Below are positions 16,051 to 61,351 of a stretch of 64,000 nucleotides of DNA, piece by piece. Below the pieces are notes generated by a model that had not been told where the DNA came from, did no database searches, and worked only from the letters and a program-made list of their open reading frames with translations. The stretch spans positions 2,348,239 through 2,412,238 of the forward strand of contig NW_018406415.1 of the NCBI RefSeq assembly GCF_002113885.1, in the 5' to 3' direction. Position 1 is the first letter of the stretch; every line of letters begins with the position of its first letter. This DNA is from Mizuhopecten yessoensis (lineage: Eukaryota). The translations under genes and the position numbers were made by a program.

Positions 16051-17858
16051 GGTCGGAAAAGAAAGATGCCGAAATAAATTATATTGCAAAACATACTGAC
16101 TATTATTTTTTTGGAAATCTTCCAAAACTTGACCTTCCCATATTAAATAGTAAGAATTCAAGATCAAATCAAAATTTCAATAAACTTTATTTATTGTGCA
16201 GAATTATGATATAACTTTTATGAACTTCGATTTGTTTTTGTTTTTGCCTGGTTGGTAGACACAGGGACTCTTACTTAGTAATGCGGAAAGAAACAGGTGT
16301 TCTTCTTTAATAGATGAAATCATTATAAAAGGCATTTTGAAGAGTATAAAAAAAACCGGTTAATATCGTTTTGCAATAGTTTGTTTTTTTAACCTTTTTG
16401 CTGCCTCAACCTCAAAATATTTCTAAAAAGTTATCAGAATGTTGTATTCATATTCTTCTCAACACATTTTTTGCTTTAAACTTGATCAAAGTAAAGTTTA
16501 AAGTAGTAATGAATATGTAATATTCCTTAATATCGTTTTCATATCAATAAGGGGACAAAAGAGGCAAAGTATAATTTTTGGATTTTTTTTACTATTGTAC
16601 TTTATTTGCAAATATTTTGTTTCCGACTAAGAAGGAGACTAGAAGTGTGTATAAATAAATTCAATTAACAATGTAACCATCAAATCTGTTTATTAGAAAT
16701 GATTACGATCATCGCTGAAGTACCTAAGTACGTCAAGTTAACTGACCCTTTGATGTGGTCAGCGTCACGAAGCTTCAAATCTGTGACTAAAACATTAGAA
16801 TTGACTAGCGATGATCATATAGAAATTAACACGCCTGTTAGCTCGACATGTCATTCAGACTTATCGGATATCAAAGGCTCGGCCCATTCTTTTCAGTACC
16901 GTTCCGGTATGCTAGCTAGTACAGGTTACATGTACGCCGTTTGACTTGCTCGGTTGTCGACTCCCCGCTGACAGAATACGCCGTAAATCACAGCCTAGTA
17001 CCATTTCATCCTCTGCGGGTACGGAGACTTGGAAGTGACAAGTGATTTTCATCCAAAAATGTATTTGCATATTAAATTTATTTTTGAAACGGAAAACTTA
17101 TTCAATATGAAAATTACCAGAGGTTTCATTTGAGGTCATTAGCGGGAAAAAATATCCTCATAGTACAGAAACTTTGGTAAATTCAGGAAATGTAATGAAA
17201 TAAACTGTCCTCTTTGGGTTGGTACAGACAACTTAAAATTTTACTTTTGTAAGTTTATGAGTCTGAACATGTATCTTAAATTCACCTCAAAATGAGGATT
17301 TTTTTTGATTTTTCCAAAATCACATTCATCCTCACCACACTGCTTAGTATAATATAATCACCAGAATTTTTATATCCCAGATATAATAGTATCTCATAGT
17401 CAAATTATAAACTGAACTGGGTTTATAATGTTAAACAGGATTTATGGTGAATGGGGTTTTAATCATATCTGGGATGTACAATACATTGTTTGTTCAAAAT
17501 GAAAAACAATTTGTGGCGTCTGCATGATATTTATTCAAGAATTGTGATGCGCGTTTGAATCATCTTCTAAATGTTATTTATATAGACATCTTCAGTGTCG
17601 ATACTTATAATATTCATTTATATCTAGTAAATCTGGACGTTGTCATGGGGTTTAGGGGGTCATCGAATGTGTTCATCTTGCGACAAAAAAATAATATAGA
17701 AGATGAGATACATTTAATTCTTACTTGTGCTGCTCAATTTGAACTGAAAAACCCCACACTTTGAGCGATATTTCCACCAACGCCCTAGTATGTATAAGTT
17801 AATCGAATTGTTGTCACGTAAAAATTTAAAACATTAAGAAATTTAAACTAAATTAAAT

Positions 17859-17883
17859 CAGAGACGTATATTATACGTCTCTG
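17859..17883. mobile_element. 25-bp CAGAGACG palindrome with 7-bp TSD (P-like footprint)
   Basis: ATTAAAT|CAGAGACGTATATTATACGTCTCTG|ATTAAAT. Confidence 0.85.
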
Positions 17884-20479
17884 ATTAAATTACATTTACG
17901 GTATGCTACCGCCAAAAAAAACACCTCGTGTATTGATATTGCTGAAGTATGTATCTAATATTGTGTGATAAATGCTACCATGGAATGGTCCTCGGTCGTG
18001 TATTATGTATACATTTAACCTATATGCTGTATTATTTCAATCGGAAATTATAAACAAATCTTGAAAACGTAAGTCAAAATTTATCATTTTTTTAGCATGT
18101 TATAAATATATAGTATTAAAAACATGTTTATTGAACATCCGACATCCGGCATTTTTATGAATTACTCAGTTAAGCAGAAGGGTGTAGACTACCAAAGCCC
18201 GATGGTATTTCGGAGGTTCCATAAGTAGTTATCCTCGCAGGTAGTATTTGCTGAAAATGATACCAAACATCTCGTGCGGTGTTAATCAGGAATGACAGAC
18301 TTAGATAAAAACAGCGGTGTAACTCGCGACACGACAGATATAATAGCTTCACAAATAATCAAATGTTAGTTCTTGTTTATTTGCAGAACACTCTGACAAA
18401 TTGTCCAGCATCTTGTTGTATTCTTATTTGTATATTTTACATCGTCAATAAAAATGGCGCTCGCTAATCTACAGGGATAAAGTCAAAGTTCATAAAAATT
18501 CGCGTGATTTTTATTTCAGCGAAAATGTACATGACCGTCAATTCAAGATATTAAATTGTTTCCAAAACAAAAGGATTAGACTTCTTACATTCTTTTACAG
18601 TAACGTCAATTTACAAGGGGTTAATTTGCATTGCAATAATGTGGAAAATTCAGTAAACTAATCAANGGGGGGACAGAGAATAATTGACAATATACACATT
18701 TTTTATGGAATATACGCAAACATGTCGGTTTTACCTTCAAAAAAGTAGTACATAGAGACAATTCTATAACTAGTTGTAAAACGAAAAGTCCACATCGATA
18801 ACCTTTGTATTACGTCAATTGTAAAAATGAAATAAAAATTATGAAGAATATTTTCATAATTATTATGTCTTTATTTCACGTATGAATTTCCGGATTAAAT
18901 TTTCTCCGGAAATTTTGGTAAGACAAGGAGGATCAGAAAGGCATTTAATGAGTAATTTCCTTTGAATAGTTGTCACGTCGATAAAAACGCTGGACGGAAA
19001 GATGTGAAAATATTCTAATATACTTTTTTTTTAAACTCTTCAAGCATCACCATTGTATTCAAGAACATTCGTTCAAACAAAAGAAAATAAGAAGTTAAAA
19101 ATCTTGTGATCTTTATTCTCACACGGAAAAGTAGCGTGTAGTTTCGATAAAATAGTATACGCAGCGGCGTTTAGAATAAATAAGGGTGGTCAGCAGATTG
19201 GTTTCGTTTTTAAAATTCAGAATGAAAGAAACCCTTCGTTCGTGTTTGGACAAACTTTACTCAACGTTCACACATATTTAAATTAACGGATTTAAACTCA
19301 TAATCTTTTGTATTTGCCTAAACAAACATCCTTTAATTAATTCACCCGTCGCGTGAGCACGCGAAAAAGGGGCATTATTTTTATGGATAGGACTAAATAC
19401 TTTTCGTTTATTGCTAAACATACATACTCACCAATTGTTTTGGACCGAAACAACAAATACATGTATGTAATATCAATAAGCTGAATTGCTTACGATGATA
19501 AAATAATTGAACAAGTAATTTTGCCCCCCGCCGGTCAGTCTGCTCAAATCAAATACGGCGTAATTGCAGTTATTATGCTATAAATCCAAGATCCGGTGCT
19601 TCATGCATATAATTATAAAATCTCTAAAAATACACACATATATATTTTTTTTCAATTATGCTGCATTCTTTTAAACTCATTTTTTTGCCGTGTCAAAATA
19701 TAATGTAATATAAAAATGACATTTTTAAAGCAGAGACTTGAAGTATAAATCCTTGTTAAAGATGCTCGAGATTTGGAATCAAATTAAAATGTGAGAATAT
19801 GGGAATACATTATTTGTCCGTTCACTTAATATATAAGCAAGATTTCATTCGACCAAATGTCATCAAAAACAAATCTTACAATTGTATCTTTGGCATCAGA
19901 AATCTTAAGCAGGAGAATTTCGATGAGTAAAGTAGAAAGACACGAGACGTGTCTAATATTTTTCTTATTCATTTCTCTTTGATTATTTTTAAAACGTAAA
20001 TGCTTCTTTGCATATATTCGTATATACTTCAGGGTTTCGACAAAACCTAGAATCAGAATTAATGTATAAAACGTCTGACAATTTTTATGCATAATTAGTA
20101 TTTAATAACACTTCCTGCAATCCCAAACCCCAATCCGTACCCTGATAAAAAGAACTATCACGATCTCCTCTTTATCGTCTTTCCTCCTCTTCCCCTTCCC
20201 TCTCACATTAGAGTACATTTAGGCACCCCTCCTCAAAAAACTAAGGTATGTGTTAAAATATTACCAAGAATTATCTGGAACTTTAAGTGTTTCTTTGCCG
20301 AGGTAAGCTCGCTTACCATATGATTTTTTTTTCTTTTTCAAATTAGCCTTTTATAGCAAGTTCCTTTCAAAGTGAAGTGGTTTTACATGCATTTTAATTA
20401 ATATTTATTCTCTCGTAAGGTTGGCTTTCGTCATGTGCTTTATGTTGTATCACATAATGTGCTGTGTTATTCAGTGAAT

Positions 20480-20516
20480 CAGAGACGTATATACTATATG
20501 GCTTAATATGTCTCCG
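20480..20516. mobile_element. 37-bp CAGAGACG element with 7-bp TSD
   Basis: AGTGAAT|CAGAGACGTATATAC...ATATGTCTCCG|AGTGAAT. Confidence 0.8.
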
Positions 20517-20584
20517 AGTGAATCAATTGTTTCAATTATGACGTCACGCCTAGGACAAGTACATGCCATCAGACTTACGCACTT

Positions 20585-20757
20585 GGCCCAGTTGTTCAAA
20601 AGGTGATTAACTTTAGAACGCAACTATTGAATTAGTTACAACTTTTCAGATATCAAATATTTACTAGAGTGATACCTTTTTCATTAACGGAATTATTAGA
20701 GGTTAACAAATGTCGTTCAATACTGATTAAGCTATCCACCTTTTGAACAACTGGGCC
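20585..20757. mobile_element. PIF/Harbinger-like MITE
   Basis: TIR GGCCCAGTTGTTCAAAAGGTG / CACCTTTTGAACAACTGGGCC; 3-bp flanks ctt/ctg. Confidence 0.7.
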
Positions 20758-22415
20758 CTGGAGTCAAAATGTCTGCTTTATACATTTCAAAGTTGCATAA
20801 AAAACAACGTTTTACACGAATAAATACAACAAATCTTGATTATGTGATAAAAAGGACCTTACACTCGTTTTCATTTCATATAAAATTAATTTTAGCTTGC
20901 TAAATTGAAAAAAAATCTTGACGAGTTTCATAAATCTCATATGAAATTGAAACTCATGTAAGATCCTATATGATATACATTCTATGCGGCAGAGACAGAT
21001 AACGTTAGAAGCAGCCAATAATGTAGGTGACTTTTTAAAGATATTGCTCATTAGTAATACCACGGAATTAGATTACCCAAGTCCGTGGTATTACTTGTGT
21101 CTGTTTATTCCGTCAAAAATATCTAATTCAAAACTGATTTTTTTTAAATTAAATAATTTAACATTTTTATCGAGCTTAATTATCTTTCACCTAGCGTGAC
21201 GTCATATTACGAACAGGGGAAAAAATACGGTAATTTTCGGCCTGTCGCGTGAGAATCCGAGTCAAACTTTCTGTAACCCCGTAGATAAACATCCTTTCCC
21301 TTTTCTCACGAGTTTGATTAAGTACGGAGTCATTAAGACCCCCATTCCTTTAATGTTATATTACGGTAAGTACCCTGTGGAGTAAAGGTGTGTATAATTA
21401 TCACAGGTGATTACAGGTAAAAGATTTATAACAGGTGTACCCGGCTGTCCAGACGCCATGGCTCGATTTCAATAAATTTCATCATTCGTGTTGATTTAGT
21501 GATTTATATCACCAACAGTCCGTGGGAGGGGTGCAACCATTTTGTGTACCGTACCAGGGGCGAAATATTATGTTAAGTTACAGCCAGTAAATACCCCCTA
21601 ATGAGGTCATAGGTAACATTTGCACCTGTGTATATCACCTGAATATGGAGGGTGACAAGAAGAAAATTTATGGCTCTACAAATTGTTTGCATTTCAGATC
21701 GGTCTCAAGTACTGGTTATGATCTAGTTGTCATTTGTATTTTTCTATATTGTTTTATTCATGTGAACGAGTGTTTAGAAATGAACTTTGACCTCTAAGAT
21801 GAAAGTGGTTAACCCACTGATCGGGTTATGATCAAAGAAACACATTGGGCCGTTACAACCATCGGCCGTCTATGTAACAAATGAACTATCAAAACATTAT
21901 CACATTATAAACAAATTCTTTTATTTTAATTGTATATTTTCATTAAACAGGCTCTTGAACAGACTACCGTTACAAATAATCAAGTCCCTGTGAAACCAAG
22001 ATGCTTTACTTCTGTAAAAACCTATTTTTTACTACAGGCATTTCCATTTGTTATTTAAATATGTAAAACATTATATAGTCTTCATAACATAACCATGACA
22101 TCATAGTAGGGTAGAGAAAACTTTTTTTCATATTCTTACTTTTGATTAAGACGTTATGTTTATTTACCAGAAGAAAACTTCCGTGTACAATTTATATGGT
22201 TTATGGTATTATGCACTGTTTCAATCATGATGATCAAATGCTGGTCTTGACTGAATGGCTTATTGATGACATTAATACCGTCCTTGTTCAGGTTATAATA
22301 AGTCAACATTGATAAATATCTTTTATCTACATCACGTACCCAGCTACACTCAGATAATATATTGCTAATCTACTTGTATAAATGCAGTACCCGTAAGTGA
22401 CCCTGTCTATTTAAG

Positions 22416-25400
22416 ATGGCGGACTTCACAAGTTATGTCAGCGTGGCTGTATTTTTACTTTGTGTGGTTTCCCGTTCGTGTAACGCACAAGCGGTGAATG
22501 CATGTCCGAGTTACGCGTGTAATCCACGCGGGACAAATTCTTACACGCTCAGTTCCCCCAACTCGTCACAAAACGCTTACGTCGCATGGAAGACAGATTT
22601 CTTCATTGGCCCTCTCCCTAACACTTTGGGTTGTGTTGGAAACCCAAATAACATCGTATGCCAGTCAAACGGACCAAAGGATGTGTACGTATAATTCGTA
22701 ACTCAATTCATTTCAATATTTTATCAGTTTTATCTTTCAATTTTCTTTCTATAATCGGGAGAGAAAAAAATCAAAATTCATATATCTTATCAAATTATTT
22801 AATCTTATAAAACTGTTTAAAAATATCAGATTTCTGTAAAATGTAAGTAACGATAAAGCATTTCAATACTCAATTTCTTTCCAAAGATATTTATTCGCCG
22901 AATAAGTTACTAATTATTTAAGATTCCTGGTTATAATATGGCAAATACCTTAGACACCATGCTCACATTTTACGACAGTCCACTTTTCTTAAAAAGTTTT
23001 TGTTTCCAAAAAGTTTTTGTTTCCAAAAAGTTTTTGTTTCCAAAAAGTATGCTTTCCTTTCGGGGAAATATGAGTTATGGAAAAAGAAGAGATAAGGTAT
23101 TTCCTGCATAGGGAAATAGACTCATATTGCATGTAATTTCAACTTTTTTTCTTCACCAAGGAACCTACAAAGAAAACCACCTCACCAAATAATATCTGAA
23201 CAAAAATGTAGATCGTTGGTGAGAAAAAAACATAATTATATTGATTTGTTATAGGGTTTCTGATTAACAAAATGATTAAGAAACAACAATACAATTATTG
23301 CCTTTTAATGAGATCCATACAAAGTTTTATCAACCCAAGAATGAAAATAAACCGAGTAAAATATCCTGTATAAGACCGTATATATTGACCTCACAAAGGC
23401 GATAAGATGATATAGATACTAGTCGGTGTACGCTGTTTATTGATAACAGTCTTCTTAGAGGTATACGACACAGATGTAATATGTAGAACAAATACAAGAT
23501 ATGATCACAGGGGCTAGACACTACGACCTACAGGGCTATATCTTACATCATGTGACCAGCCCCTGTGCTTGTTTTTCCAAGTTGGTATAAGCGCATGCAG
23601 GAATAATTCACGTTTGAAAATCTAGAGCACGATATTTATTTTATGTTTTATAAATACTATTTACGAGGTATAAAATATCATTAGGCAGTAATTTGAAATC
23701 CACCTGCTTATTCAAAATGTATCTCAAATGACTTTCCGTTTCATGTCATTTTTATAAAAGGCGAGCGTCAGACTTATAAAAATCACAGAGTAAAAATCAG
23801 ATGCCTTTTGAAATTATTTATACGGACACATTTGTCAATTATTTGACTAGAACTACTGAAAATGCATTGGGTTTTTTCGGCGCAAACACATGACGTCATT
23901 TGATTTAAGACGTCATAGTACAGTTTTCGAATTAATTGCCCTGTTCAATACATTACTATGCGAATTTTCCCTAAAACTTGCCAACTCCATCCATCGTCGC
24001 CATTATTTTTGACTCCATTAAACCATTATCATGCGCAAGTGCGGATACTGTGGGCAAACCAATTTTGTTGTAACTTGTCTAACAATCAAAACGTCCAATG
24101 CGAACATTGAAACCAGTTTTCAGCTGTAAGTCTCTTCAAATGTTCTCCAAATCGTAGACAAAATAGTGTTTTTCATTAATTTATAACGGCAACAAGAAAT
24201 TCGGTTTGAGCTCAAAATCCATGCTTGAGCATGAGAACGGTTTCATGAATATGTCTAGTATCAATGTGACGTTACAATACCATGACGTCATGTATTTTGT
24301 CTTAATTCTGACGTCACAGTGGATATTTTTACATGAGATGATACTCGCACTATATGACGCATAGCTCACTAACACGGATTTCATGAGTTATAACACGGAA
24401 TAAGATTGTTATCCACGACCGTGGTTATCAATAGTAGATATGATATTAGTTCTGTTCAAACCCTACAAAGCTCACACCGCCGTGAAGGACGTTCTACAGA
24501 TTACACAAGTGGTATAAACAAACAAATATACGCACGTTATCAATTGCGCATAGAACGTAGGTATCGTCAGGCGAAGTCCCTAAGAAAAATACTTTAAATT
24601 CAAAACGAGCTCCACGCGAGCAATGATGAGATTCATAAATATCATAAAATGGAATCGATTGTAAAGACTCTGTTTATCATACGATGAAGATTTTTTCCTA
24701 AAATTATTTTCAGACTGTCTTTTAAATTTTTGACTGTCAACCCTTTTGTGACGTCTCATCGCAGTTCGAAAGTTGTGATGTCGTGGATTTGTCTTAGTTG
24801 TGACGCCACAGTGGAACCAATAATTAGTGGAACCATTTAATAGTTCCACCAAACTTACAGCCATACACTGCCAAGCAATAACCTAATAGGTCTGAGGAAA
24901 CGACCGCTAGTTATCACATTACCGCACTCATGATTCGTAGGATACTCAATGTCTGTAAAACGGTAAGATGATTCCATATCAAGATAAAAAAAAATGACGC
25001 CTGTTGCTGTTTAATTCTTTAGTGTGACATCGCGTATCTAGTTATCAATTGAGTTTTGATTTTAACCTTAAAAACTTCTAATAGAACTCCGAACACATCA
25101 GTTCAGGACAAAAACAAACCAACTGTAACAAATTCCCAGGTCCCTGTGGATAAACCGTTCCCAACTCCTCATTGTAACGTTTCCAGGGGTTACATCAGCC
25201 TAGACGTCGGAACTGGGTCCCTCGAATGGGCCAGCAGCCTCCTCCGGTTCCCCGTTCTTCCCATCATGGATATTTTCGGTGACATCATAGGCACGGATGG
25301 ACATTATCTCGTCAAGATTGAGGATAGCGGGAAAACGTTTTCGCCAATTAAAATCGCGGACGTGTTGTTCCCGATGTACAGGTAACTATTATAGGACTGT

Positions 25401-27836
25401 TATTTTCGCGGGCATTTTAGACTTTAACTGATCACAAAAATGTCTTGGGTGATACAGAGACTGGATGTATACGTCTATGGTCGGTAGACAGGCCAGGCAG
25501 TTGTTTTCAACATTGTACTAATATTTGAAAGAGTTTAATATCTAACACATTTTTTGAACTTCAGCAGTAAATTTTAATCGATCATCACGAGTCGAGTTGA
25601 ATATTCTGTTTCTTTCGGAAGTCGGGACCCTGTGAAATTACCCAAACTATGAATTGCAGAATGGAATCAGATTATCCTTAGTCTGTGAGTTCATGCCATA
25701 TCAAGTGGTGAGCTTGTAACAACTATGGGAGAAATTGCCGACAGCAGGCACTTGTGTGTAACAAGGAAAATGTCGTTTGAAATTAATGAAATATTCGCTT
25801 TATATCATTAATATGATTTTCTACTGACAGTCTACTGATATCAGCCAATAGTTTGATTCTACTGGTGTCCAAGAGCGGGGCTGTCATTGTTTACGAAACA
25901 GGTAAGAAATAAACAAGAAATCGAGTTTAGACAAACGAAAAAAAACCACCAGGTAATAAGTAATAACCGGTCCGGAAACTGACCGCCTTTAGATCTATTA
26001 ATGCCGCGCATGGAGGACAGTCAGGTCCCGGACCGATTCTCTCTTTTTTTTTATCATTTTCATCTTCTCTATGTTTTAATTTCCATTATCTAATGTCAAG
26101 AACCATTGGTTACAATGGAAAGAGGTATTCTCATAAATTTGGATTTCAAAAACGTGAAGGTAAAATAGAAATATTCGGAATTTTGAGGTTATGAGTCCAA
26201 ATTTAAGATGAATTGTATATATTTTTTTGAGTTTCTCAAGTCAACATTTCTTGATTTCTTTTGAAGATTAAATAACTTTTTTTTATTTGCTCAAGTCCGA
26301 TATTTCTTTAATCAATGCATATGTGTTCGTTAAATCGAGAATCGAGAATTATAAGATAGACTTATAAAATTATACATCGTGCTTATTTTAATGTCTGTGG
26401 TAGGACAGCGTCTAGATAAAGTTTTGCATACCCCTAATAATGTTTTTCAATTTGAAGGACAGATTGTATATTAATTAAGTGGTAATTAACGTGGTTTTAA
26501 TAATTCAAAGCTTTTATGGCATCCAAGAATATTATGTCAGTTAATCATATGTTTACTAATAATAACACCCTTTTTGTATGTGTAATAAGTATAAAATTTC
26601 CACAAGTTGATATCAGCCCGGGTGATATCCCCCCCCCCCCCCCCTTGAAAGTGATATCACACCCCTAGAAAAGTGATATCATACCCCCTAGAAAAGTGAT
26701 ATCACACCCTCTAGAAAAGTGATATCACCCCGCCCCTAGAAAAGTGATATCACACCCCCTCCCAAATTTCCGGATTTTGCCGCTTCCGCTAAATGCTGTC
26801 TACTTTTAATGTAAACAAACGAATTGTTGGCATGGAATAACTGCGGTTTCATGGAATATAATTTAAAGATTAATTTACAAAGCCCCACCCAAATTTCAAT
26901 AACCATATCATTTTGTAGGAATTTGGGAATTTCTAAATGTTGACTTTTTACATTTATAATTGTTACTGTTTTGTTTATATACATCATTGTTTTTGTTACC
27001 ATTTTTATGAATATAAATAAAATAATTTTGTTTTTAAATTTTATTTTGAAAGAAAAAACATGATAAAAAGTTTATGATATGACAATTTTGATATCACACC
27101 CCCAATCAGCCCTGAGTCCTAATATCAGCCCTCTGTACTATAAAAATGGACATATAATAATTTCTTAATACCATACAAAGGCGACCTGCTTCTATTTTTT
27201 TTAAAGAATTTTCCATCTTAATTTAACTACAAACTTATGCCCTCCTAGTTTGAAAGTAAGTCCAGAATCAGACATCCAAGTGATCAAAATTAAATTAAAT
27301 TAAAGTCTTATTTCTACTGAATGATTCAACATCCAGAGAGGGAACCAGTCTATGCATGGACTGTCCCTGGCATATCATAATACTTTTATTTCGTGCATAA
27401 TTTCCTCTCGCGGTTGCGGATGTTGGGAGTGTTGCTTTGTTTACACAACCTGTTGATCAGTTCCTCAGGCGGTGCCNCCCCCCCCCCCCCCCCCCTGCTC
27501 CGTATTACGTAGACTATAAACATAAACAAAAGCGCTGACCTGTATTACTTGGGAAAACCCAGTCACTAGACACGAACGAAAATATAAACTATTAATCGTT
27601 ATCTCAGGCTCACTGTGTACAATTTTGATATAGTGGGAGCACAGGGACCTGGTAATTTGTTACAGCTATATTTGGACCTAAATTAAGGTGTTCAGTGTAA
27701 TTGTACATGCATTACGGGTTTAGATCGACTCTCGGTGTCATTTTTACCGAAAGTCGATCTTAAAACCCTTAAACATGTAAATTTACACTGTACACCTTAA
27801 CCTTAGTTTAGGTCCAAATATAGCTGTAACAAATGN

Positions 27837-27879
<43 letters not shown>

Positions 27880-32586: not shown

Positions 32587-34052
32587 TGTCGGACGTAACA
32601 TGATATTAATGAACATATATATTCATAACACACTGACCACAGAATGTTTCAGACGTAGTATGTTGATAACACAGGGACCTGACAACAGGATTTAGTATAT
32701 GTCGTTGATAATTAAGCGTTGGAAGTTAGCATGTTAAGAACACAGGGACCTGAAATCAAAATGTTGTATGACCGGGTACCTGAGAACATGATTTAGTAAA
32801 TGTCGGACGTAGCATGTTAATAACACAGGGACATGAGAACAGGATGTAACAAGTGTCGGACATAGCATGTTAATAACCCAGTGCCATATGCAAACAGGAT
32901 TTAGTTAGTGTCGGAGGTAGCATGTTTATAACACAGGGACATGGGAACAGGATTCATCATGGGAATCCCCTTGTCACTTAATAAAAGCAAGACCACAAAC
33001 TTGTGTTTAGTAAGTGTCGGACGTAGCACGGTAAAAACCCAGGGACATGCGAACAGGATTTAGTTAGTGTCGGACGTAGCATGTTTATAAGACAGGGACC
33101 TGAGAACAGGATTCGGTTTGTTTCGGACGAAGCATGTTAATAACACAGGGATCTGAGAACAGGATTTAGTTAGTGTCGGACGTAGCATGTTAATAACACA
33201 GGGGTCTGATAACAGGATTTAGTAAGTGTCGGACGTAGCACGGTAAAAACCCAGGGACATGCGAACAGAATTTAGTTAGTGTCGGACGTAGCATGTTTAT
33301 AAGACAGGGACATGAGAACAGGATTCAGTTTGTTTAGGACGTAGCATGTTAATAACACAGGGATCTGAGAACAGGATTTAGTAAGTGTCGGACGTAGCAC
33401 GGTAAAAACCCAGGGACATGCGAACAGGATTTAGTTAGTGTCGGACGTAGCATGTTTATAAGACAGGGACATGCGAACAGGATTCAGTTTGATTCGGACG
33501 TAGCATGTTAATAACACAGGGACCTGGGAACAGGATTTAGTAAGTGTCGGACGTAGATTGTTTATAACACAGGGACATGAGAACAGGATTCAGTTTGTTT
33601 CGGACGTAGCATGTTAATAACACATGGGTCTGATAACAGGATTTAGTTAGTGTCGGACGTAGCACGGTAACAACCCAGGGACATGCGAACAGGATTTAGT
33701 TAGTGTCGGACGTAGCATGTTTATAAGACAGGGACCTGAGAACAGGATTCAGTTTGTTTCGGACGTAGCATGTTAATAACACAGGGATCTGAGAACAGGA
33801 TTTAGTTAGTGTCGGACGTAGAATGTTTATAACACAGGGACATGAGAACAGGATTCAGTTTGTTTCGGACGTAGCACGTTAATAACCCAGGGACACGAGA
33901 ACAGGATTTGTTTATAACACAGGGACATGATAACAGGATGTAATAAGTGTCGGACGTATCATGTTAATAACCAAGGGCCAGGTACCTGAGAACAGGATTC
34001 AGTTTGTGTCTGACGTAGCATGTTAAAAATAACACAGGGATCTGAGAACAGG
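32587..34052. repeat. 53-bp minisatellite (~25 units) with higher-order variants
   Basis: Unit gtcggacgtagcatgttaataacacagggacctgagaacaggatttagtaagt; period measured 33016->33069. Confidence 0.95.
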
Positions 34053-34099
34053 GTAACGTTGTGACCAATGCTGATGTGTGGTGAGTTTATCGGCCATCG

Positions 34100-47996: not shown

Positions 47997-48754
47997 TTGA
48001 TGGAAATTTGCAAATGTACCCTACTGATAACTACGATCATTATTTAATAAATGGTTTAATCTCAGATCCTTGCATCAATCCCAAAATTTTCTTAAATCAG
48101 TTTTTCGCTCAACATAATATGAAGAAACATTTTGGTAATACAGACTGTAATTAGTTTGTTCTTAAAACATCTAAGAAAGCTAACGCAAAAAAATGCTGAG
48201 AAAATGAAATCTTCTCAATATCTTTTTGTCCTGTAAAAATATTTTGAATTCTATCATTTTGAAAGTTTCAGACAAGAAATATTTTTCTTTGTTTAATTTT
48301 ACACCAAAGTCATTATTTGGGTATATTTTGTTAATTTGAAATTTTAATATTTTTGCCTTGTAAATTAAGGAAAAATGCAAGACAGACATTTCTAGCCGGT
48401 GTAAAATTGTTAATCAAGTTTATCGTTTCATGTTTGTTGTAGGATACGTAGAACTATAGAAATATGCCTATTTGTCCTTGCTTGGCAATTTAGATAAGGA
48501 AGATAAAAAAAAAATGACTTTAAAAGATGGGAAAACTGTGTTTGTTTATATTTAAGTCACAAATGAAAATTTAATAAACAAGTTTAAGTTGATAAATATC
48601 AAACCTAAAATTTTACTAATCCATACTTTGTGAAATGCAGATAATTTGAAAGCTACATCAATTTCTTGATATCAGTACTGCCTGGTACTATTTTTCCCAA
48701 TTGACCATTTTTCTGTCTTCTCTTCCTCGACATTAAATTAAATGTCTTCCACAT

Positions 48755-48778
48755 CAGAGACGTATATATACGTCTCTG
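48755..48778. mobile_element. 24-bp perfect CAGAGACG palindrome with 7-bp TSD
   Basis: TCCACAT|CAGAGACGTATATATACGTCTCTG|TCCACAT. Confidence 0.9.
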
Positions 48779-50924
48779 TCCACATGTACAAGAAGCTTTC
48801 AAAGGATTTTTTTTCAAGAGTTTTACTGATAAAGGTGTAGCAAGTGTCGCATCAAATATGAATGTAAATCTTTACTGAAGACATATTTGGAAGGTAAGAA
48901 GAAAACCTGTCGATAGTCTTCAGTTAATTCTTCATCAATGAATGGACAATGCTAAATTAACACATTTTGGAAAGGGAGGCAACTGTATTGGAAAGGGAGG
49001 CAACTGTAAAACACAAATCATATTGTACATTTATTAGGAAGTGTTTATCAATTAAAATAATCTGGATTCGAAAATGAACAATTACAGGAGCTGCATCAAA
49101 CTAAGTGTGATTTAGAAAATTTGGTGGAAAGTTGAGTAATCTGGATTGATCTACACAACAAGAGGGTAGGTCACGTAATATATCGCGTCACCAGCACACA
49201 TTACATTGTTGTTTAAATCTGTATATTTGTCATTTTAATAAAAGGACAGTATGGAATATTATCTTTCTTGTTATGTTTGTCCATTACAAACAAAGAGATA
49301 CGTTAACAAAAATATACTGGCCTATTTCCTTATGGTGGATCGAGTTATAGGATTAAAGGACACTACATGCCATATCATGTCTGCCACAGATTTTGTTTAT
49401 CAGGAAGTAATGTTTAGCTCGCCTGCCTCTTAGAGGATGTGTGTCTAAAATCTTCGAGCCATTCTATTGAAACACGCACAAGTTTTATCATCGTACGATG
49501 AAGAATGTGTCCTTAATATTTTATAAAATGCAGAAGTTATAATCCACACAAGGAAATCTACATATTTGATCTTGAACCTTGACCTTTGGAGTAGGGCCCA
49601 GAAATGGTATGCATACCTAGTTGTCGAATGATAGTACATGTAAAATGATTTTGAACATGAACTCGTGAAATTCTATAAAACAACAGGTTGTCCAGACGAT
49701 CAAAAACAGCATATTTGTCTTTTTGACATATTAACGTTGGTGACCTTGAACTTTGGGTAGCAGCAAATTATTCCATGATTTTTGAAAAATTCTCTTTAGC
49801 TTGAATTATTAGACAAGGAACAGGATATTAATCTTTGACCTCTATCAGTGGCACATGACCCTTCCCTCTAATGGTGATGCATATTTCCATTCAATGGAGC
49901 CATTTGAAGCTGGTGTGTTCCAACAGGATCCTTATAAATATTAGTTTCATTTTAGGGGTGTAACAATGTATCAAACCATTATGGTGTCGTAAAATATTTT
50001 GATTTGTGATAAATGTATCATCTAGTCACATGACATATAACCATAAAAATAATTTAATAATGATAAAAAAGTTAAATATAGCAAATTTATGTAATCTGTA
50101 CTGTCTTTTTCATTACCTAAACCAAATGTAGCAGAACTGGACTGGGTCAATCGCGAGCGACCAGGTAGCTCAATTGGTAAGAGCGTCCATCTAGGGTTTG
50201 GAGTTTCGGTTGGAACCCCAGTCTGGCAATTGCATTTCTCTTGTTACCCAAGTTACAAAGGTAAAAGATACAATGGAAAATGGCAGAGATTCTACATGCA
50301 CAATGCTGTGGTCAATGTTACAGTCAAGATACATGGCAATATATACACCTTCCACAGTTTACAAGACTTTTGAATGTCAGAGTTTGTTCAAACTAAATAC
50401 TGTGGGTACGTATGTTGAAAACTTAACCCTTGTAAAATATCACTTTGTATAGTACTACAAACTTATATGTACCAAGTTAGGTGATGATGATATCGATAAT
50501 AGTACAACTATGGCATAGAAACCATCAACCAATCAGATTGCAGTGATGGACATATAGAATGACCTTGGTCTTTTGACACAAAGATCTGAACAAAAGGAGT
50601 ACAGCTGTCTACCTCAAACCAAGTACATGAACTACTGACTAATGAAGATGAAAGTAGAGAATGTGATTTTATGGACGGGAAACCATCAGCAAATTGGATT
50701 AAAGGAAATGACCTTGAATATCCTAATGAACAAAGGTGAGGTGAAATGCAAAAAATTGTGAAACACAGACACATACTTTATCAAGAAATTTATTGAAATC
50801 GGTACCAAAGTAGTTCAAATGTTAGACAATGCAGTCAAAAGTCTGTTAATTATAATGTCAGTCGATTCCATCATCAATACAAAGTATTTCAACATGCAAT
50901 TAGATCCACAGAAAAGAAATTATT

Positions 50925-51210: not shown

Positions 51211-51331
51211 AACAAAGAAAATTCATAGAACAAAATACAGATATTCATCAGTAACCATAACAAAAACTGCAAAACATGCATCGATGAGAAACCAACAAAT
51301 ATTTATCAGGTTGTACAGAAGGCATGCAAGT

Positions 51332-52955: not shown

Positions 52956-55900
52956 CTAACGGAAAAACCTAATGTTTTGCATGCAAACACCTCTTGGCCC
53001 TGCCATTCCTGGTGGATAGCCCCTTCTTCTCTGATTATAGGGGACAATGCGATGCATGTGCCGCGGAGGCATTGTCTGGTGTCCGGGTGGATGATAGTTC
53101 TGTCGACCGTACGGCTGCCAATTGTACGGCTCAATGTTCTGGCCGAAATTATCACATGCGTTGAAATTATTTGAGCTGAAATCAACATCATCTACCATTT
53201 GGTTATTATCAGGCAGCTGATTTTCCTGAAAGTTCAAACAATTCTCTTGGTAGTCTTCGGCGAAGTCTACTGGATTCATCTCATCAGTGAACAAGGCCAA
53301 ACCCCTGCCCATGTCTGTGCAATGTTGTTGGCTGTTTGTCCTAGTACCATAATTTGCCACATGGTTGTCAACTTGAAAATAGCCATAGCCCATTTTCCTG
53401 ATTGGTCCACCGTACCGCTCTTCAATGCTGGGCATGTTGCCGACTTGAATCTGCCCAAAGTTAACCTGTTGCCGAACATTTTGTGACTGGGCCAAAGGAT
53501 GGACAGACAGGCACATGTTCTGGGGAGGTTTCCGCAGAAAATTCGGAACAACGTTAGTATTCTGCAACTGTAATCCAAGAGAGACAGAATTTCCATTTTC
53601 TGTCCGATTTCTTTGAGTGAAGTTCTTTTTTACCTGGTTTAGATTGGCTGTACAAGGCTTCACGACCCCCTTAACCTCTGTCTGATTTGGCAACTTTTCG
53701 CCGAAAGCCTCTGTGATATGTGATAGAAGCAAATTGGTGATCCGGCGATGTGCAGTCATATCCCAGTGAATGCCATCCTCTGCCCGACGGTGTAGGTGGT
53801 AACGTAGGAAGTGGTGCAGGTCAACCACATCAAATCCATGCGAGGCTACGATTTGACGTGCGACAAAGTTTGCTTCCAGTACCTCCAGTTGTAGAGAGTT
53901 CATCATATGTTCTACCTCTGGAACAATGACGCCACCCTTGGCCTTTCTGGACACTGGCAGGGTGGTGTTCCATAAAGCCAAACAGTTCTCTGTCAAACAG
54001 TTCTTCATACAGACACACAGCTTCTCCAGGTTCACCTTGTAATCACTCACATAGCTATCACCATACCTGAAGCGAGAAATAAGTCTACAGATGCATTTTA
54101 TTTTCAACAAAATCACTACCATTTTTTCTCTATCCACTGAAAATATTGTACTGTATAATTATAAAATTTATTTGGGGATTTAATTTTCATTTATTTTGTT
54201 GTTTTCCACAAACTATAATTCCAAAGATCCCAGTTAGTATGAAGCTATGGATGATAGCACATTGATTGTCACTTTGGGTGATTTTAACCATTCCAATAAA
54301 GACATCTTTCTCATACAAATCACGAAAGAACAATTCTATTTTTAGTAAGTGACCTCATCAATGACCTTGACAAACCATGGCAAAATCTATTAGGAATTCT
54401 TCTTTTTTTCTTAGGGCAACCCATGTGAAAGCATAATATTTCGTTTGGAATTTAATTTAGTCTATTTAGTCTATTTTGTGGTTTTATAATTTCAAAGTAT
54501 AGCTCTGTTGTGAAAATTTGTTCCGATATAAGCATCTGGACGACGGATGCAGACATTCCATTTAATTGAATTTTTGAATTCTCTTTGAATTCTTTGAATT
54601 CTTTTGGGAGATAAAATGATAGAGTTGTGTAAAAAAAAAACGTATTTCTGATAAAAAATTGGTAAAACCAAAGTTAAAAATATCATACTAAGAAGATGCT
54701 GACCTGGTTATATCCCAGAGACACGAGTTAATGATAACAATGTCAGGCCGTGGTTCCTCCTTCAGCTCGGTCAATATGGAATTCACATAGTTGTTAAAGC
54801 AGCGTGTCACAAAGTAAAATCGCACCAGGTGGTAATCTGTTTTGTATTGTCGTACTTCGCGATAGTGGATACCGTTGTTCATCTCGCCTTTCTTACCCCC
54901 GTGTAATAGCACGTCAGCCGCAAAGTTCATCTCGCCCTACAACGAAAACAAATATCTTAGCAACATATGAGAAGGGTAATTAAATAGCAATCACCTGGTT
55001 AAAAACAAGAAGTGATGCTTCCTTTAAGTCATTCACCCCTGAGGTTTCATAATGAACTATTCCAACCTTTGAATTGGAATAGTTCAAATGTGTCTTTAGG
55101 GTTGAATGAGTTAACCAACAGCTAATTCAGTGATTGGTTTGGTTAGGTTTTATTTTGTTTAACATCCTATGAACGGCTATGGTCAGTTAAGGAAATGCCT
55201 CAATGCGTGTAATACATGCTTGTGTGTATGTGTACCGGAGGCAGCGTATGTTGAATGTTGATGAATTTGCCTCGTTCAGATAGCATGGATCTGATGCCGA
55301 CTTTACAGTGCTATCCCACCTGGTCATATTATGGTGACAAAGGGTAAACCAGTAGTTGTGATAAGCCAACATGCTAAATGTTGAGTAGGGAATAACATAT
55401 ACCATTTTAATGGCTTGTTTTTGGTGTCCCAGCGTGGGGACAGAGCCCATTGCCTACCCCACTTGGGAGAACGCTGAACACCAAGGCAAAAAGTAAGGTG
55501 TTGCCAAGCAAGGCACTAGGAACCAAAAAGGTTTTTAGGAAGTAAAGAGAAAATATAAAGATCCTAAATGTTTCAATTGGGTGCAGCAGATCAATTGTAG
55601 CAGAAGTCATAGATGCAAGCCCCCATTTCTGCAGGGGGCTCCACTTTAGTCGCCTCTGACAACATGTAGCGGGATACAGCAGGCTTATTCTTCCCCCGAC
55701 ATGCAGGGGACCCAACTAAGTGATCTTGTACCCTTGACCCTGTGACTGTCACCAGCAGCAGGTTTGATGGTTATTCTTTATAAAGGTATTTGTGAACACA
55801 TGTAGCAAGTTCAATGACATAAATTTCATTCATTGTCTGTTGAAAACTTATTTTACCAATGACTTTTTGTCGTTTACCTTTAACCTTTAGCTACCCATCT

Positions 55901-57212
55901 CTAAGATTTTACCTTGGCCCGAAGTTGACGATCTTTCAGATAGCTGTTTTTCTGCAGCAACATCACCAAGTCCTTGTAGATTGACCTTTGAACTGAAACA
56001 AGATGCGACTTTCTTAATAATTGTATATATTATGTACAGTGGGGTAAAGGAGGGGGAGGCAAATTCCTAATCATTTACCGAATACAGTACATTAAGGAAA
56101 ATTCATGGTAAAAGAAGATTTATTTTTACTTTCGAAATATCTTCATGCAATGAACTAAAACTAGCTGAATTAAATATGAAGAAAAGTACAGTACATGTAT
56201 TCTAAAATAAGTCGTTACTCTAAATGCATTTTGATACACCTCAAAATCCCATCAAGATGGATTGTAAAGATGTACCAGGGCCATACCATTTCTGTGTGTG
56301 GATATAGTAGTAGTCCTTCAAAATTCCTCTTTGACTAAATGTTAGCTGAAGAATTGTTTTATTCATGGTACATCATTAACAAGAGGCCCAAGGGCCTTAG
56401 CGGTCACCTGAGTTATATCATAGATACTGGTAGCTTTATTTTATTGTTTAGATGTGATGTGGAAATCAGCATGTAAACTAAGTGAAATACAATACTTGTC
56501 ATGTCATCAATGGATAAGAATTTGAAAATATTGGTAAATGTTCCCTTTGGGGCCCCGCCCTAGCCCCTGGGGATGGGGCAGGAATCCTAATTTTACAAAG
56601 TAAAACTCTCATTTACCCAAGATGATTCTGACTAAGTTTGAGCAATTTTCTGCTGAAAATGGATAAAATATATACCGAAAAGTGTTATTTCCCTATATAA
56701 ACTATATTAAACGTTAACCCCTCCCCAAGGGAGAACGGATAGCTCGGGGTCCTGATATTTTCAATTTAAATAAAGCCCCTGATGATCTTTCTTTCCACGT
56801 AAAGAAAATCACTGTAGTACCTCTGAGTCTGGAGAAGAAGATTTTTGAAATATTGATTAATTTTCCCTTTGGGGCCCCGCCCTGGCCCCAGGGGTTGGGG
56901 TAGGAATCCCAATTTTACAATTTTGAAGCCTCATCTACCAAGGATGATTCTGACCAAGTTTGAAAAAAATCCATCCACTGGTTCTTGAGAAGAAGTTGAA
57001 AATGTAAAAGTTTACGCACGACGCACGACGGACGACGGACGACGACGGACGAAAAGCGATTGGAATAGGTCACTTGAGCAAAGCTCAGGTGACCTAAAAA
57101 TGTCATTACAATGATAAACAAAGAACTGGCACAAACCTGATGATCCGATCACAACAACAAACTTGTTCTTCAGAATGCCATAAGCATCTTTACTCAGGAA
57201 GATGTCCGACAT
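52956..57212 (-). CDS. PCED1A: PCED1/FAM113-like paralogue B, 499 aa
   Basis: Exons 57137-57212, 55913-55992, 54704-54936 and 52956-54066 (1500 nt); 80- and 233-nt internal exons equal those of paralogue A. Motifs NKFVVVIGSSVQRSIYKDL, NSCLWDITRYG, DGIHW. Confidence 0.92.
55028..55110. mobile_element. piggyBac-like MITE with TTAA on both sides
   Basis: TTAA|GTCATTCACCCCT...AGGGTTGAATGAG|TTAA. Confidence 0.75.
55136..55715 (-). mobile_element. Diverged Meta-type SINE with 5' extension (intron of PCED1-B)
   Basis: Colinear with 35231-35735 (tail, gccgacttta.agtgcta core, ggggacaga.ccca head, ttagtcgcctct extension). Confidence 0.7.
56378..57100 (+). mobile_element. HINE/pearl-like element in the first coding intron of PCED1-B
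   Basis: Same termini as the 51332 element (aacaagaggccc..ggtcacctgag; (GACG)n; aggtcacttgagc..gctcaggtgacctaaaaa) but a different core. Confidence 0.85.
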
Positions 57213-58836
57213 GTTTGTTATCAAAGAGTTCTAAAAATGAACGAAAATATCATTCGTTTCAGATTAAATATACAAAAACTTAATTAGCATGTGAATAACC
57301 AAGAAACAAAGGTGGTCCACTTATCTTCCGCTTATATGCATTGATACGGATGAGCCCATTATGGTTTATAGTGTTGAAAGGGTTAAATAAGAATAAGAAA
57401 CAAGCAAGCCCGCCTGAAATGCTCCATCATCAGTTTTGAAACTAAGATTTTTTGTCAAGAAATGAGCTGGGCTGCCCACGAAAATTCTCAGTTCCCTGGG
57501 TCAAAAGGTGGTAGTCCTGCCAAGATCATATCAAAGTACTGTTGAGATGCTTGGAGTTCCAAATCACACATGCTATTGTGGAAAGAGAGCTGACAGGATT
57601 TTGAATGCTTCAACTTAATTTAATTACCTGCATTCTAGAGAATTTTGAGCACTGAATGTCATTTTCTATTTGCCATTCAATCTTATAAATATATGACATT
57701 TTACTCAGCGGTTAATCAGCTGGGAGATTTGTATAGCCTATGTCAATTTTTGGCTGCTATATGCTATGAACCCTGTCCATGATTAATGTAATTAAAATTT
57801 GTTCCTTTGTTTTACAAAATCAAAAGCAAGCGAGAATTTGCTTAATATATCTATACTGATGTCTGATGGACCAGTGAGAGCAAAACATGAAATCTACATG
57901 TATTATATATTTATATGCCAGTTTTATTTATATAATATATGTTAATAAATAATTGCAAGGCAAAATAGTGTTACTTCTATAACAATAATTAGACACCAGA
58001 CACAATATATTTATTTTAATTTCTTTTTGCAGGTGCTTCAACTAAAACCACTTGCCCCTCAATGACAACCTGATGGGTTTGAAAATGTTATACTCTGACT
58101 GTCTTTGGGATGCTTCACAACACATAAGGTTATATATAATAGAAGTACTCAAGTCTTATATACAGATATATAGCCAGTAGTCGATCTGGATTGACATTAG
58201 CCATCATTTAGGTCAAAGGGAGATAATAGTGTAAAGACTATTTTACAGAAATACAGCTAGACCACATGTTGCATTTCAGGGCATTTAAATACATCGTATA
58301 TCTAGCATTAACAACAATATGTGTTTTAAAACTAAGAAATTTAATATCAATATTGGTATGTTTGCTTGAGTAATGATTGTCAGTCGAAACGAAAAATACC
58401 CGTGGATAGAAAAGGTTCGGAAATGAATCTAATTCCGTGGTCCAACTAAATGACATTAGTATTCAAATATAATTTACAACTTATTTAGTTATATGTACAT
58501 AGATCTATATCCATTTAAGATATTTGGTAACTGTAAGCATATGACGACCGGTAAAACTGTGCTTCTTACCTGCAGACGTGCCCTGCTTGTTGTGCGAACC
58601 CTTTAGCTTGCATGCAGACAAACACGGGCGCGCTCGAACCAGCTTTGAACTATCTTGGACCACGGGCTTCGGTACTCTAATTTCCGTGCCAGACATAATC
58701 GAAGTGGCAGAGCATACAATTTATTAAAACTAAAACAAAATTATTTAACAAGCTTAATCGGTGTTTTTTAACATATTTTAAACAAACAAAATCATATTCA
58801 GAAACAGTCAAAATTAGCAGATGCTATTAGATCTAC

Positions 58837-58861
58837 CAGAGACGTATATTACACGTCTCTG
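58837..58861. mobile_element. 25-bp CAGAGACG palindrome with 7-bp TSD
   Basis: GATCTAC|CAGAGACGTATATTACACGTCTCTG|GATCTAC. Confidence 0.88.
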
Positions 58862-61123
58862 GATCTACTTGTAAAGCAAAAAAGACATTTCCACTAATCT
58901 TAAAACAAACATGCTGAATTATAAAAGAAATTATACTTGATTATCACGGGGGTAACCCGATACTCGCTATTTCGCTTACGTCAGAGCACGGACTTAGATT
59001 AGTTATCTAAGTCTGTGCTGTTTGGATTACGTCGGAGCAAAAAGTTAGTTTTGCACCAAATACGGTTTACGGCAGAGACAAATTCTCCCACGATTGGAAG
59101 AGTGTTGCGGCAAAATACAAGATTACGTAAGTATAATGATGTGATATAAGCAGCCAAGTTGAAACAATGATAACACAAAAGTCTGTTGACGGTATAGATA
59201 CTATCACATACACGTGTCATAGTCGATTTAATACTTTAATTATGAATATTCTGACGTAATACACAAATCTACGTGTATTTGATATTTAAAGATGAATAAA
59301 ACGATTCCCCGTGTCATTGAAATGAAGTAAATAGCTACAATAATAGAACGAATAATACTATTATTATTAAATATATGAATGCATCACATGGACATTACAT
59401 TTGTGCATAAACTGCTATTTAATACTGGTGATACGGATTACGAACGTGCTCAATTTTAGTTGATACGGATGACGTTCTATGTTGATACCGGTCACGTTGT
59501 ATTAAATCGATTATCAAGCGAGAGGTTTTTTTATCACTATTTTATATCTCCGTCTCTTAAGAAATTAATAGCTCTGAGAGACAAAGTAACTTTGGAAATG
59601 AATTTATGTTACTCTTTTATATACCCGCAATTTAAAGTTTGTTTTAGTGATACTGTTAAGTAGCATGAGTGTAACCCTTGACCAGTATAATGTGTAACGT
59701 ATCGATTGAAAAAAAGTGACATGCACGCTAGCGTAGTTACTTTTGGCAGTATAAGTTAAATCCGCCTTGATGTTTAATTACGTTTGGGTCTTTTGTGAAG
59801 TTGCTTTCAATATAAAGGTTTGTTATAAAGTTACTTGTTCCAATTGTGTGAACAAATACGTTACAAGAACAAAGTATATCCTTGTTTTAATGCAGCATAC
59901 CATACTTCTCAAATATATATCAAATTCATAGTAGCAGGGACTATATACTGTCCCTGATAGTAGTTACCAAAAAAAGTACAAATAACATACCATTTCGATT
60001 GAAGATGTTGTAAAGTTTGATTTGTATCATGGCTGGCAAGGTAACATATATACGTTACAATATGATACTCAACTTTAAAGCGATACAGGCGAGGTAGTAT
60101 CTTTGTTGTGTTGCTGAAGAACGAATGTTTTGTACTGTAGATATGCATTAGTCGATGAAAAAATACCTTTCTAAAACTAAACCCATGAAAAGTGTTCAAA
60201 AGTTTGAAGTTCAAAGAATGAAATATTGTATTTGAATATATTTGTTTTGAATGATTTCCGTTCGGGCCAAATGCCTATTTTCATATACGACCAGAAAAAC
60301 GTGTCAGCATTTATTGCAGAAATGTCTGTTTTTATGACACAGTCTATCTTGGATTCGCGAATATGATAAATTTGAAGAAAAACATTTCGATTTGAAGAAG
60401 TACTGGATCACCTATCTGTTAAATACTGACAATGGCCTGTTGGGAATGGACACTTCTGTTTTCAAAACCGGTTTCGGTTTATTATCCTACACATGTTACT
60501 CGTTTGAGAAAAGATAATACAGTGTTCTTAATGCAAAGTTCATTTTCCACTTTTACTGTATACGTAATGGCGCATGATAAGTGAGAATAAACGATTAAGC
60601 AGTCACTGGACAAGGACCTGTAGACAGCATTCAGTAGCTGATGCTAGATTGCAATGAAGAAGGTTAGATGAAAGTCAGAACTAGTATGGTCAAAGTTTTG
60701 TTGGTGTAGCACTTTTACTTCAGCAGAGACAAGATAAACGCAAACACTGACGAGGAAACTGACAAAGTCGCGGGACCAAAGCAGCAGCTGGTATTTTGAA
60801 AAAAGATGTACAGCGGAGCCCATGATATATCTAAAATGTAATATTATTTGATCTTTCTAATTTTAGTAGGTCTAGAACTTAAACTTTTTGAGATACAACA
60901 CACATTACACAGCTAACACTTAAAATTTTCTGCCACAAAAAATATAGGTTGTCAGAATTTTAAGAATTTTAAATGTAAAATGGAGTGAATTTTGAAAAAA
61001 AATGGAACACACAATTTTTTGCAAAATAATGTCAATAAAAATGATACTAACATAGGTTAGTATTGCATTGATGTATATCAATTTCATAAATGCTGAAATT
61101 GTGTAAAATTAATGATCTATGAA

Positions 61124-61159
61124 CAGAGACGTATAAAGCCAGTTGTATACATGTCTCTG
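61124..61159. mobile_element. 36-bp CAGAGACG element with 7-bp TSD (1 mismatch)
   Basis: CTATGAA|CAGAGACGTATAAAGCCAGTTGTATACATGTCTCTG|CTATAAA. Confidence 0.75.
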
Positions 61160-61351
61160 CTATAAACGATTAAAAATTGACATTTTATAATTAAACCATA
61201 TACACATAGTAATTGCATGTAAGAGTTATCTTACTTGAAAAACTTCACAGTAGTGAAATAGGTAGCCGGTTTCCTGAAGATTAATAATAAACATTAGAAT
61301 TCAACTAGGGATGTACTTCCTATTTCTGTTTAACAATACACTCCTATGACC

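Follow-up and report, generated by a model that had tools for sequence, protein, structure and literature searches.

Palindromic scars with 7-bp target-site duplications in the Yesso scallop genome, probably left by excision of cut-and-paste transposons

The window analysed here, a 64 kb stretch of the genome of Mizuhopecten yessoensis (Yesso scallop), carries about 14 short palindromes that are probably scars, formed when donor sites were repaired after cut-and-paste DNA transposons had left, with the P superfamily as the most probable source. The P assignment is based on the 7-bp target-site duplication together with the long transposon ends that are retained. The scars group into three end-families (CAGAGACG.., CACGGA.. 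and CAGGGAC..) and point to three or more source families of transposons, distinct in their ends. Their density is about 1 per 5 kb, and the value of 1 per 13 kb given by a first-pass annotation, which had noticed five of them, was too low. The mechanism of scar formation is known from fruit flies; its natural record in scallops and a mussel is dense and easily read.

Scars of the Yesso scallop window

All five palindromes reported by the first-pass annotation are present together with their flanking 7-bp direct repeats, and are real and far above chance. They belong to family A, and like the other features described below are not assigned to a strand. Scar 1 (nt 17852–17890, palindrome 17859–17883) is 25 bp long, lies within a perfect ATTAAAT duplication and consists of 12 + 13 nt of ends without untemplated bases. 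Scar 2 (nt 20473–20523, palindrome 20480–20516; 37 bp, perfect AGTGAAT duplication) joins 19 nt of end type 2 to 18 nt of end type 1, and its right tip is mutated to ..CTCCG. Scar 3 (nt 48748–48785, palindrome 48755–48778) is a perfect palindrome of 24 bp with a TCCACAT duplication, while scar 4 (nt 58830–58868, palindrome 58837–58861) has 25 bp, a GATCTAC duplication and one arm mismatch. Scar 5 (nt 61117–61166, palindrome 61124–61159; 36 bp, CTATGAA/CTATAAA duplication) is nested within a high-copy repeat and is made up of 19 nt of end 1, TT and 15 nt of end 2. There are also two decayed relatives, one of 46 bp (nt 6775–6834, palindrome 6782–6827) with an AAATACT/ATTTACT duplication (5/7) and one of 39 bp and the CAGAGACC.. 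subtype (nt 7173–7225, palindrome 7180–7218) with an ATAAAAG/ATAAAAT duplication, as well as a probable family A scar of 25 bp with flanks that do not match (nt 25455–25479), composed of 6 nt plus 19 nt of end 1 (3 mismatches). Lengths in family A are 24, 25, 25, 25, 36, 37, 39 and 46 bp, with differing junctions, and one 25-bp form is present twice in the window (17859 and 58837).

Family B (CACGGAATTAGATTA..) is represented by scars of 27 bp (nt 21054–21094, palindrome 21061–21087; GTAATAC/GTATTAC duplication), 37 bp (nt 41309–41359, palindrome 41316–41352; perfect GATGCGG duplication) and 30 bp (nt 24387–24430, palindrome 24394–24423; GTTATAA/GTTATCA duplication), by an older scar of 32 bp (nt 8531–8562; flanks AATTGAA/GTTTGAA, 5/7), and by a 31-bp palindrome of 16 + 15 nt of two ends with non-matching flanks (nt 58987–59017). 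Family C (CAGGGACTATA..) has a 22-bp scar (nt 59928–59963, palindrome 59935–59956) within a perfect ATAGTAG duplication. A convincing duplication is absent at three scars (25455, 58987 and 8531). Two CACAGGGAC.. MITEs (nt 8588–8690 and 62367–62463) are without a 7-bp duplication and are unrelated to the scars.

The excess over chance is large. CAGAGACG occurs nine times in the window (0.42 expected), and a 12-mer end with up to two mismatches gave 16 matches (3.1 expected). Among 149 CANRG...CYNTG pairs spaced 14–60 bp apart, five are flanked by a perfect 7-bp repeat and eight by one with at most one mismatch, as against 0–2 in controls (n = 10) in which the right flank was displaced; flanking repeats of 5, 6, 8, 9 or 10 bp were found at none of the 149 pairs. 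Tiny palindromes with 7-bp flanks and ends other than CA..TG were noise, occurring at counts equal to those of controls, so that the excess is specific to palindromes combining CA..TG ends with duplications of exactly 7 bp.

Each family A scar splits into two end prefixes of 5–19 nt with 0–2 nt between them, a partition that used two end sequences taken from long scars and is partly circular, as these sequences derive from the scars themselves. The retained end is 5–19 (perhaps 20) nt per arm and was never seen to be longer. The stop at 19–20 nt holds for about 20 scars of three families in four species, and the longest gap-free scars measure 37, 37 and 38 bp (two families, two species). End 2, taken from scar 2, agrees at 18/19 positions with scars of Pecten maximus, along each arm of a perfect 38-bp palindrome (L011:7651–7688). 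The 12–13 nt of 'filler' described in the first-pass annotation for the 36–37 bp copies is therefore further terminal sequence, giving 18–19 nt per arm, while the junction variability noted there is borne out. The arms were possibly joined through a self-complementary TATA, as was also proposed there.

Empty site, other individuals and other bivalves

In at least 30 contigs that carry paralogous copies of the repeat hosting scar 5, exactly nt 61117–61159 are missing, that is, 43 nt (7 + 36), and these copies serve as an empty site for the scar. Scar 4 is spanned by contigs of four other individuals, with no difference listed inside it, and the family C scar by contigs of two other individuals, again with no difference listed; neither is an assembly artefact. 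The comparison of empty, footprint and full-element alleles proposed in the first pass thus yielded empties for 61124, which are paralogous only, and neither an empty nor a full-element allele at 58837 in the contigs of four individuals.

Family A scars with perfect duplications are also found in Pecten maximus and, once, in Mytilus galloprovincialis. Ylistrum balloti carries a 24-bp scar identical to scar 3 (L012:9669–9692), the flanks of which match at only 5/7 positions. The protein encoded in the flanking region is 57–67% identical in other genera, so non-coding DNA would not be expected to align. A hotspot in Pecten maximus contains one scar nested inside another.

Proposed excision and repair, and the rival readings

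Scars of this form would arise if a full-size element inserts, generating a 7-bp target-site duplication, and is later excised by a transposase making a widely staggered cut, with the transferred strand severed at the element tip and the opposite strand about 19 nt further in. Such a cut would leave a 3′ single-stranded tail of transposon end on each flank. The two tails would then be end-joined, at times after trimming, via 0–2 nt of microhomology or with a few extra bases, and in the product the two copies of the duplication would enclose no more than 19 nt from each end, the second end being inverted. The resulting scars would be dead ends, unable to move, and would build up in number and decay.

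P-excision junctions of Drosophila combine an 8-bp duplication with filler and as much as 17 nt of either end (Chan, Yu and McVey 2010, PMC2895639), and end joining takes place at 17-nt 3′ overhangs (Beall and Rio 1997, as cited in PMC7776569). The 17-nt stagger is described in PMC7776569 and PMC10983969 as distinguishing P transposase from the rest of the characterised cut-and-paste transposases. The scallop scars share with Drosophila P footprints the order of duplication, partial left end, optional filler, inverted partial right end and duplication, as well as an upper bound on retained end length and the occurrence of both microhomology and apparently blunt joins. They differ in having a 7-bp duplication instead of 8 bp, and up to 19 (perhaps 20) nt per end instead of 17. 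Unlike the products of Drosophila laboratory assays, they are natural, mostly fixed in the germline, spaced at about 1 per 5 kb and known without their transposase.

Among characterised cut-and-paste enzymes, a 17-nt stagger is to our knowledge confined to P-type transposases, and its biochemical documentation to the Drosophila enzyme. The duplications of Drosophila and zebrafish P elements are 8 bp and not 7 bp long. Papers placing Galileo in the P superfamily reportedly discuss 7-bp duplications, and 1360 of Drosophila is likewise said to be a member of the superfamily with 7-bp duplications, a feature that the scallop scars share with both. Galileo, unlike the scallop scars, has very long foldback ends, and no report of genome-wide excision scars was found for it. 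Outside insects, the zebrafish Pdre2/THAP9 system is active and of P type; its terminal repeats are short (13 bp) and its duplication is 8 bp long, as against 7 bp in the scallop scars (PMC10983969, in the searched passages of which no description of Pdre2 donor-site junctions was found).

The duplication in the window falls within the 7–8 bp range of the P superfamily (eight candidates at 7 bp, 0 at 8 bp), and the arm limit points to a long donor stagger, with a cut that we infer to lie about 2 nt beyond that of Drosophila. The CANRG termini that the first-pass annotation had taken as a P hallmark fit these families but are not a defining feature of P, as the CATGA.. end of Drosophila P shows. 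Its footprint reading holds up in the strict 7-bp duplication, inverted tips, variable junctions, empty site and absence of intermediates, and the P origin that it proposed is the probable one.

A parent element was sought in several ways. A P-superfamily parent would be expected to encode a transposase that combines an N-terminal THAP domain, an RNase H-like catalytic core and a GTP-binding insertion domain, and to have subterminal transposase-binding sites besides its terminal inverted repeats; of such ends the scars preserve no more than the outer 19 nt. A scan for inverted CANRG ends spaced 61–12,000 bp apart within a 7-bp duplication gave 0 long elements in the window versus 0–2 in controls, and searches with 12–19 nt end patterns across the window returned only scars and chance matches. 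Pfam detected no THAP or P-transposase family among window ORFs of at least 75 aa or among ORFs of at least 110 aa in eight related loci (L011–L018), and no credible match came from a THAP-motif regular expression; overall, the window and about 200 kb of related loci yielded neither a longer element with these ends nor a THAP/P transposase. A 19-mer end had a single match among metagenome contigs, in sequence resembling that of a bacterial plasmid, which was put down to chance, eight matches of a 17-mer end in viral contigs are about the chance expectation, and the end sequences searched as literature text returned unrelated papers only.

The scars could instead be extreme internal deletions from interrupted gap repair, formed by synthesis from the sister copy followed by end joining, in which case their size would be uninformative about the stagger. 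Most recovered Drosophila P repair products do reflect incomplete synthesis and then end joining (PMC2895639), and a few scars have extra bases between their arms. Gap repair predicts a broad range of sizes, however, whereas the arms stop at 19–20 nt throughout the scars, families and species compared, and the window has no element of 61–12,000 bp with such ends and duplication; this origin is considered improbable.

We give an equally low probability to excision of parents from some non-P superfamily that likewise leaves long overhangs on cleavage. Such parents would agree with the lack of a visible transposase, and cleavage biochemistry is missing for many eukaryotic superfamilies; the CAGAG.. 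and CAGGG.. tips, which we take to resemble hAT ends, also count in their favour. Against them stands the strictly 7-bp duplication. The hAT elements have an 8-bp duplication, and their excision hairpins form on the flank, leaving footprints without transposon ends; a hAT parent was rejected, as no candidate has an 8-bp duplication and transposon ends are what the scars are made of. The only catalogued superfamilies known to us that fit are P (7–8 bp) and the target-specific Dada (6–7 bp), and the insertion sites have no common target gene.

Slightly less probable still, and very unlikely, is that the palindromes (20–40 bp) are themselves the mobile unit, as ultra-small non-autonomous elements mobilised in trans by a transposase for which the outer 10–12 bp suffice. 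The first-pass annotation had offered such smallest mobilisable elements as its alternative. A 25-bp form does occur twice in the window and a 24-bp form is common to Yesso scallop and Ylistrum, all copies have inverted ends and a duplication in the manner of MITEs, and no parent was found. Recurrent forms are expected anyway from repair at the same microhomologies, however, and copies differ at their junctions (20 to 46 bp, with differing arm pairs) and are not linked by shared private mutations. If the cut lies about 19 nt inside the ends, elements no longer than 38 bp would remain entirely within the donor overhangs and be unable to leave, and, by analogy, Drosophila P transposase requires binding sites further inside the element than its terminal repeats. 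Membership of the MITE class was rejected: the scars share inverted ends, a target-site duplication and many copies with MITEs, but at 20–46 bp are far under typical MITE size and have variable junctions and no conserved interior, and the shared length and internal sequence expected of MITE copies are both lacking in family A.

Implications of a probable natural excision record

Read as excision products, the natural scars provide an abundant readout of the cut position of related enzymes in distant animals, inferred here to be about 19 nt. They likewise give a measure of the frequency with which insertions are subsequently lost: about 14 scars, none above 46 bp, versus 0 intact elements in 64 kb. 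As small indels with hairpin potential they are missed by ordinary repeat annotation, and therefore bear on estimates of transposon activity, on alignment-based variant calling and on the dating of excision. If, against expectation, palindromes of 20–38 bp were mobilisable, they would be the smallest transposable units known. A milder reading is more likely, namely that one CAGAGAC..-tipped P lineage has persisted in or spread across bivalves, cuts about 19 rather than 17 nt inside its ends and tends to reinsert in or beside its own scars, as at the Pecten maximus hotspot, and we put this forward tentatively, at somewhat less than even chances. The CAGAGAC.. ends are common to three scallop genera and a mussel, which may reflect either long vertical persistence or horizontal transfer.

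Families of scar-like palindromes in the scallop window

The five palindromes with 7-bp flanking repeats reported by the first-pass annotation of this Yesso scallop sequence (Mizuhopecten yessoensis, scaffold NEDP02003088.1, GCA_002113885.2) were all re-found, with precisely the same coordinates. They belong to a set of tiny palindromes (20–46 bp), here called scars, that usually lie inside 7-bp duplications and are sorted into families A, B and C by their end sequences. The motif CAGAGACG occurs nine times in the window against 0.42 expected, and the 12-mer with up to two mismatches 16 times against 3.1. These relaxed matches and further scans of the window give a total of about 14 scar-like objects in the 64 kb. 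They include decayed relatives of family A (6782–6827, 7180–7218 and 25455–25479), family B scars with ends CACGGAATTAGATTAG / CACGGACTAAGATAAC (21061–87, 41316–52, 24394–423, 8531–62 and 58987–59017) and a family C scar with end CAGGGACTATA (59935–56).

Among 149 CANRG...CYNTG pairs lying 14–60 bp apart, five carry a perfect 7-bp flanking repeat and eight carry one with no more than one mismatch, compared with 0–2 in ten control runs with the right flank displaced. Flanking repeats of 5, 6, 8, 9 or 10 bp were absent from these pairs in the window, and tiny palindromes with any other ends and 7-bp flanks were no more frequent there than in controls. Of 17 duplications from the window, two Pecten maximus loci and one locus of Mytilus galloprovincialis, 9 begin and end with complementary bases, several reading GTnnnAC, a hint of a palindromic target preference in a sample too small to judge.

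MITEs of another, unrelated family, whose ends read CACAGGGACC.., also lie in the window (8588–8690, 27640–27834, 62367–62463 and 25123–25148); they lack the 7-bp duplication and possibly have one of 8 bp. A previously annotated minisatellite (32587–34052) contains similar CACAGGGAC.. strings. Paralogous last exons of two PC-esterase domain genes (PCED1A/B-like) lie at 44239–45219 and 52956–54137, and a nanos gene at 15090–15794 on the minus strand. Long G/C homopolymer runs with N at 27475–27863 are probably an assembly artefact.

Anatomy of the scars and their occurrence in other bivalves

Long family A copies have two end types that share their first 12 nt. The 19 nt at 61124–61142 define end 1, which the right arms of 20480–20516 and 25455–25479 repeat with three mismatches apiece. 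End 2 is taken from 20480–20498 (19 nt), and the right arm of 61124–61159 contains 15 nt of it, altered by two transitions. Scripted decomposition with these ends resolves the 24–25 bp scars into 12 + 12 or 12 + 13 nt with no untemplated bases, the 37-bp scar into 19 + 18 nt, the 36-bp scar into 19 + TT + 15 nt and the 25-bp scar at 25455 into 6 + 19 nt. All family A arms are at most 19 nt long, base 20 being ambiguous. Family B arms, judged by eye, measure 15 + 12, 16 + 15, 15 + 15 and 18/19 + 19/18 nt (the last in 37 bp). Because the long scars resolve into two end arms, the 12–13 nt formerly read as filler are terminal sequence.

The decomposition is partly circular, since the ends were read off the scars themselves, and the match across species is an independent check on it. 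Loci around orthologues of one window gene were scanned as the window was. In Pecten maximus, family A scars flanked by perfect 7-bp duplications were found at L011:6784–6805 (22 bp), 6985–7004 (20 bp), 7149–7181 (33 bp) and 7651–7688 (38 bp), and at L016:8618–8652 (35 bp). In the 38-bp scar, two 19-nt arms form a perfect palindrome, and each arm agrees with end 2 of the scallop at 18 of its 19 positions. At least five family A scars fall within about 550 bp (L011:6763–7300, LR736849.1), an insertion hotspot, and scar 6784–6805 is nested in an older scar, whose own sequence forms its 7-bp duplication. Hotspot and nesting suggest that the elements hop locally or prefer old scars as targets. Ylistrum balloti carries the 24-bp form identical to that of the scallop (L012:9669–9692; flanks matching at 5/7). 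Family A ends are also present in a mussel, far from scallops: in Mytilus galloprovincialis (OZ263148.1), a 35-bp palindrome whose tips read CAGAGACAT.. lies inside a perfect GACAAAC duplication (L014:8095–8129). No scars were seen in 20–40 kb each, low-power samples, of Argopecten, Mytilus edulis, Tegillarca and Solemya.

Scar sites in other individuals

The interval 57000–62000 was compared with contigs of four individuals, drawn from four studies. The scar at 61124–61159 lies in a very high-copy repeat (60841–61508; contig depths sum to as much as ~1e5, and tandem units of ~60 bp run from about 61330 on). In at least 30 contigs of other repeat copies, 61116 is joined directly to 61160, so that the missing 43 nt correspond to the 36-bp palindrome and one copy of the 7-bp duplication; loose contig ends confirm that a single CTATGAA precedes the downstream sequence. 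These copies represent a paralogous empty site. The scar at 58837–61 is spanned by contigs in all four individuals with no internal differences listed, and the family C scar is unaltered in two. Since neither an empty nor a full-element allele was seen in these contigs, these scars are genuine DNA, probably fixed.

In all four individuals, some contigs of single-copy depth pass directly from 58449 to 58987, leaving out 537 nt, and other contigs of the same runs continue unbroken through this interval. The right side of the joint begins exactly at a family B palindrome.

Probable excision mechanism and alternatives

P superfamily elements make 7–8 bp duplications and hAT elements 8 bp; 7-bp duplications are reportedly discussed in papers on Galileo. 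The strict 7-bp duplication is thus compatible with P and not with hAT. Tc1/mariner excision leaves 2–3 nt, piggyBac excision is precise, and with hAT, Transib and Mutator the hairpins arise on flanking DNA; chemistries other than that of P are not known to leave 12–19 nt of both ends behind. In Drosophila, P excision with end joining at 17-nt 3′ overhangs leaves the duplication, up to 17 nt per end and optional filler (PMC2895639), and the scallop scars share this layout. According to passages of two papers (PMC7776569; PMC10983969), a long stagger sets P transposase apart from other characterised cut-and-paste enzymes. How the DNA was cut and repaired, and by what type of transposase, is inferred as follows: a P-type element would insert, producing the 7-bp duplication, and would later be cut out with a stagger of ~19 nt, and the single-stranded tails at the donor site would then be joined into a scar.

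That the scars are themselves mobile mini-elements, the other possibility raised by the first-pass annotation, is unlikely, because junctions vary between scars and the donor tails would wholly contain any element of up to 38 bp. Abortive gap repair is also improbable as the principal route, since arms end at 19–20 nt and the window holds no intermediates.

A search of the window for elements 61–12000 bp long, with inverted CANRG ends inside a 7-bp duplication, yielded none (0–2 in controls). Neither Pfam searches of the window and eight related loci nor a motif scan returned a THAP or P-transposase ORF, and the 17–19 nt end gave chance matches only in metagenome and viral collections. Text searches of the literature returned no account of these ends, nor of natural P-type scars in molluscs. 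The excision-scar mechanism preferred here is itself already known; the novelty lies in the host group, the abundance of the scars and their multiple families, the variant with a 7-bp duplication and 19-nt arms, and the distribution among bivalves.
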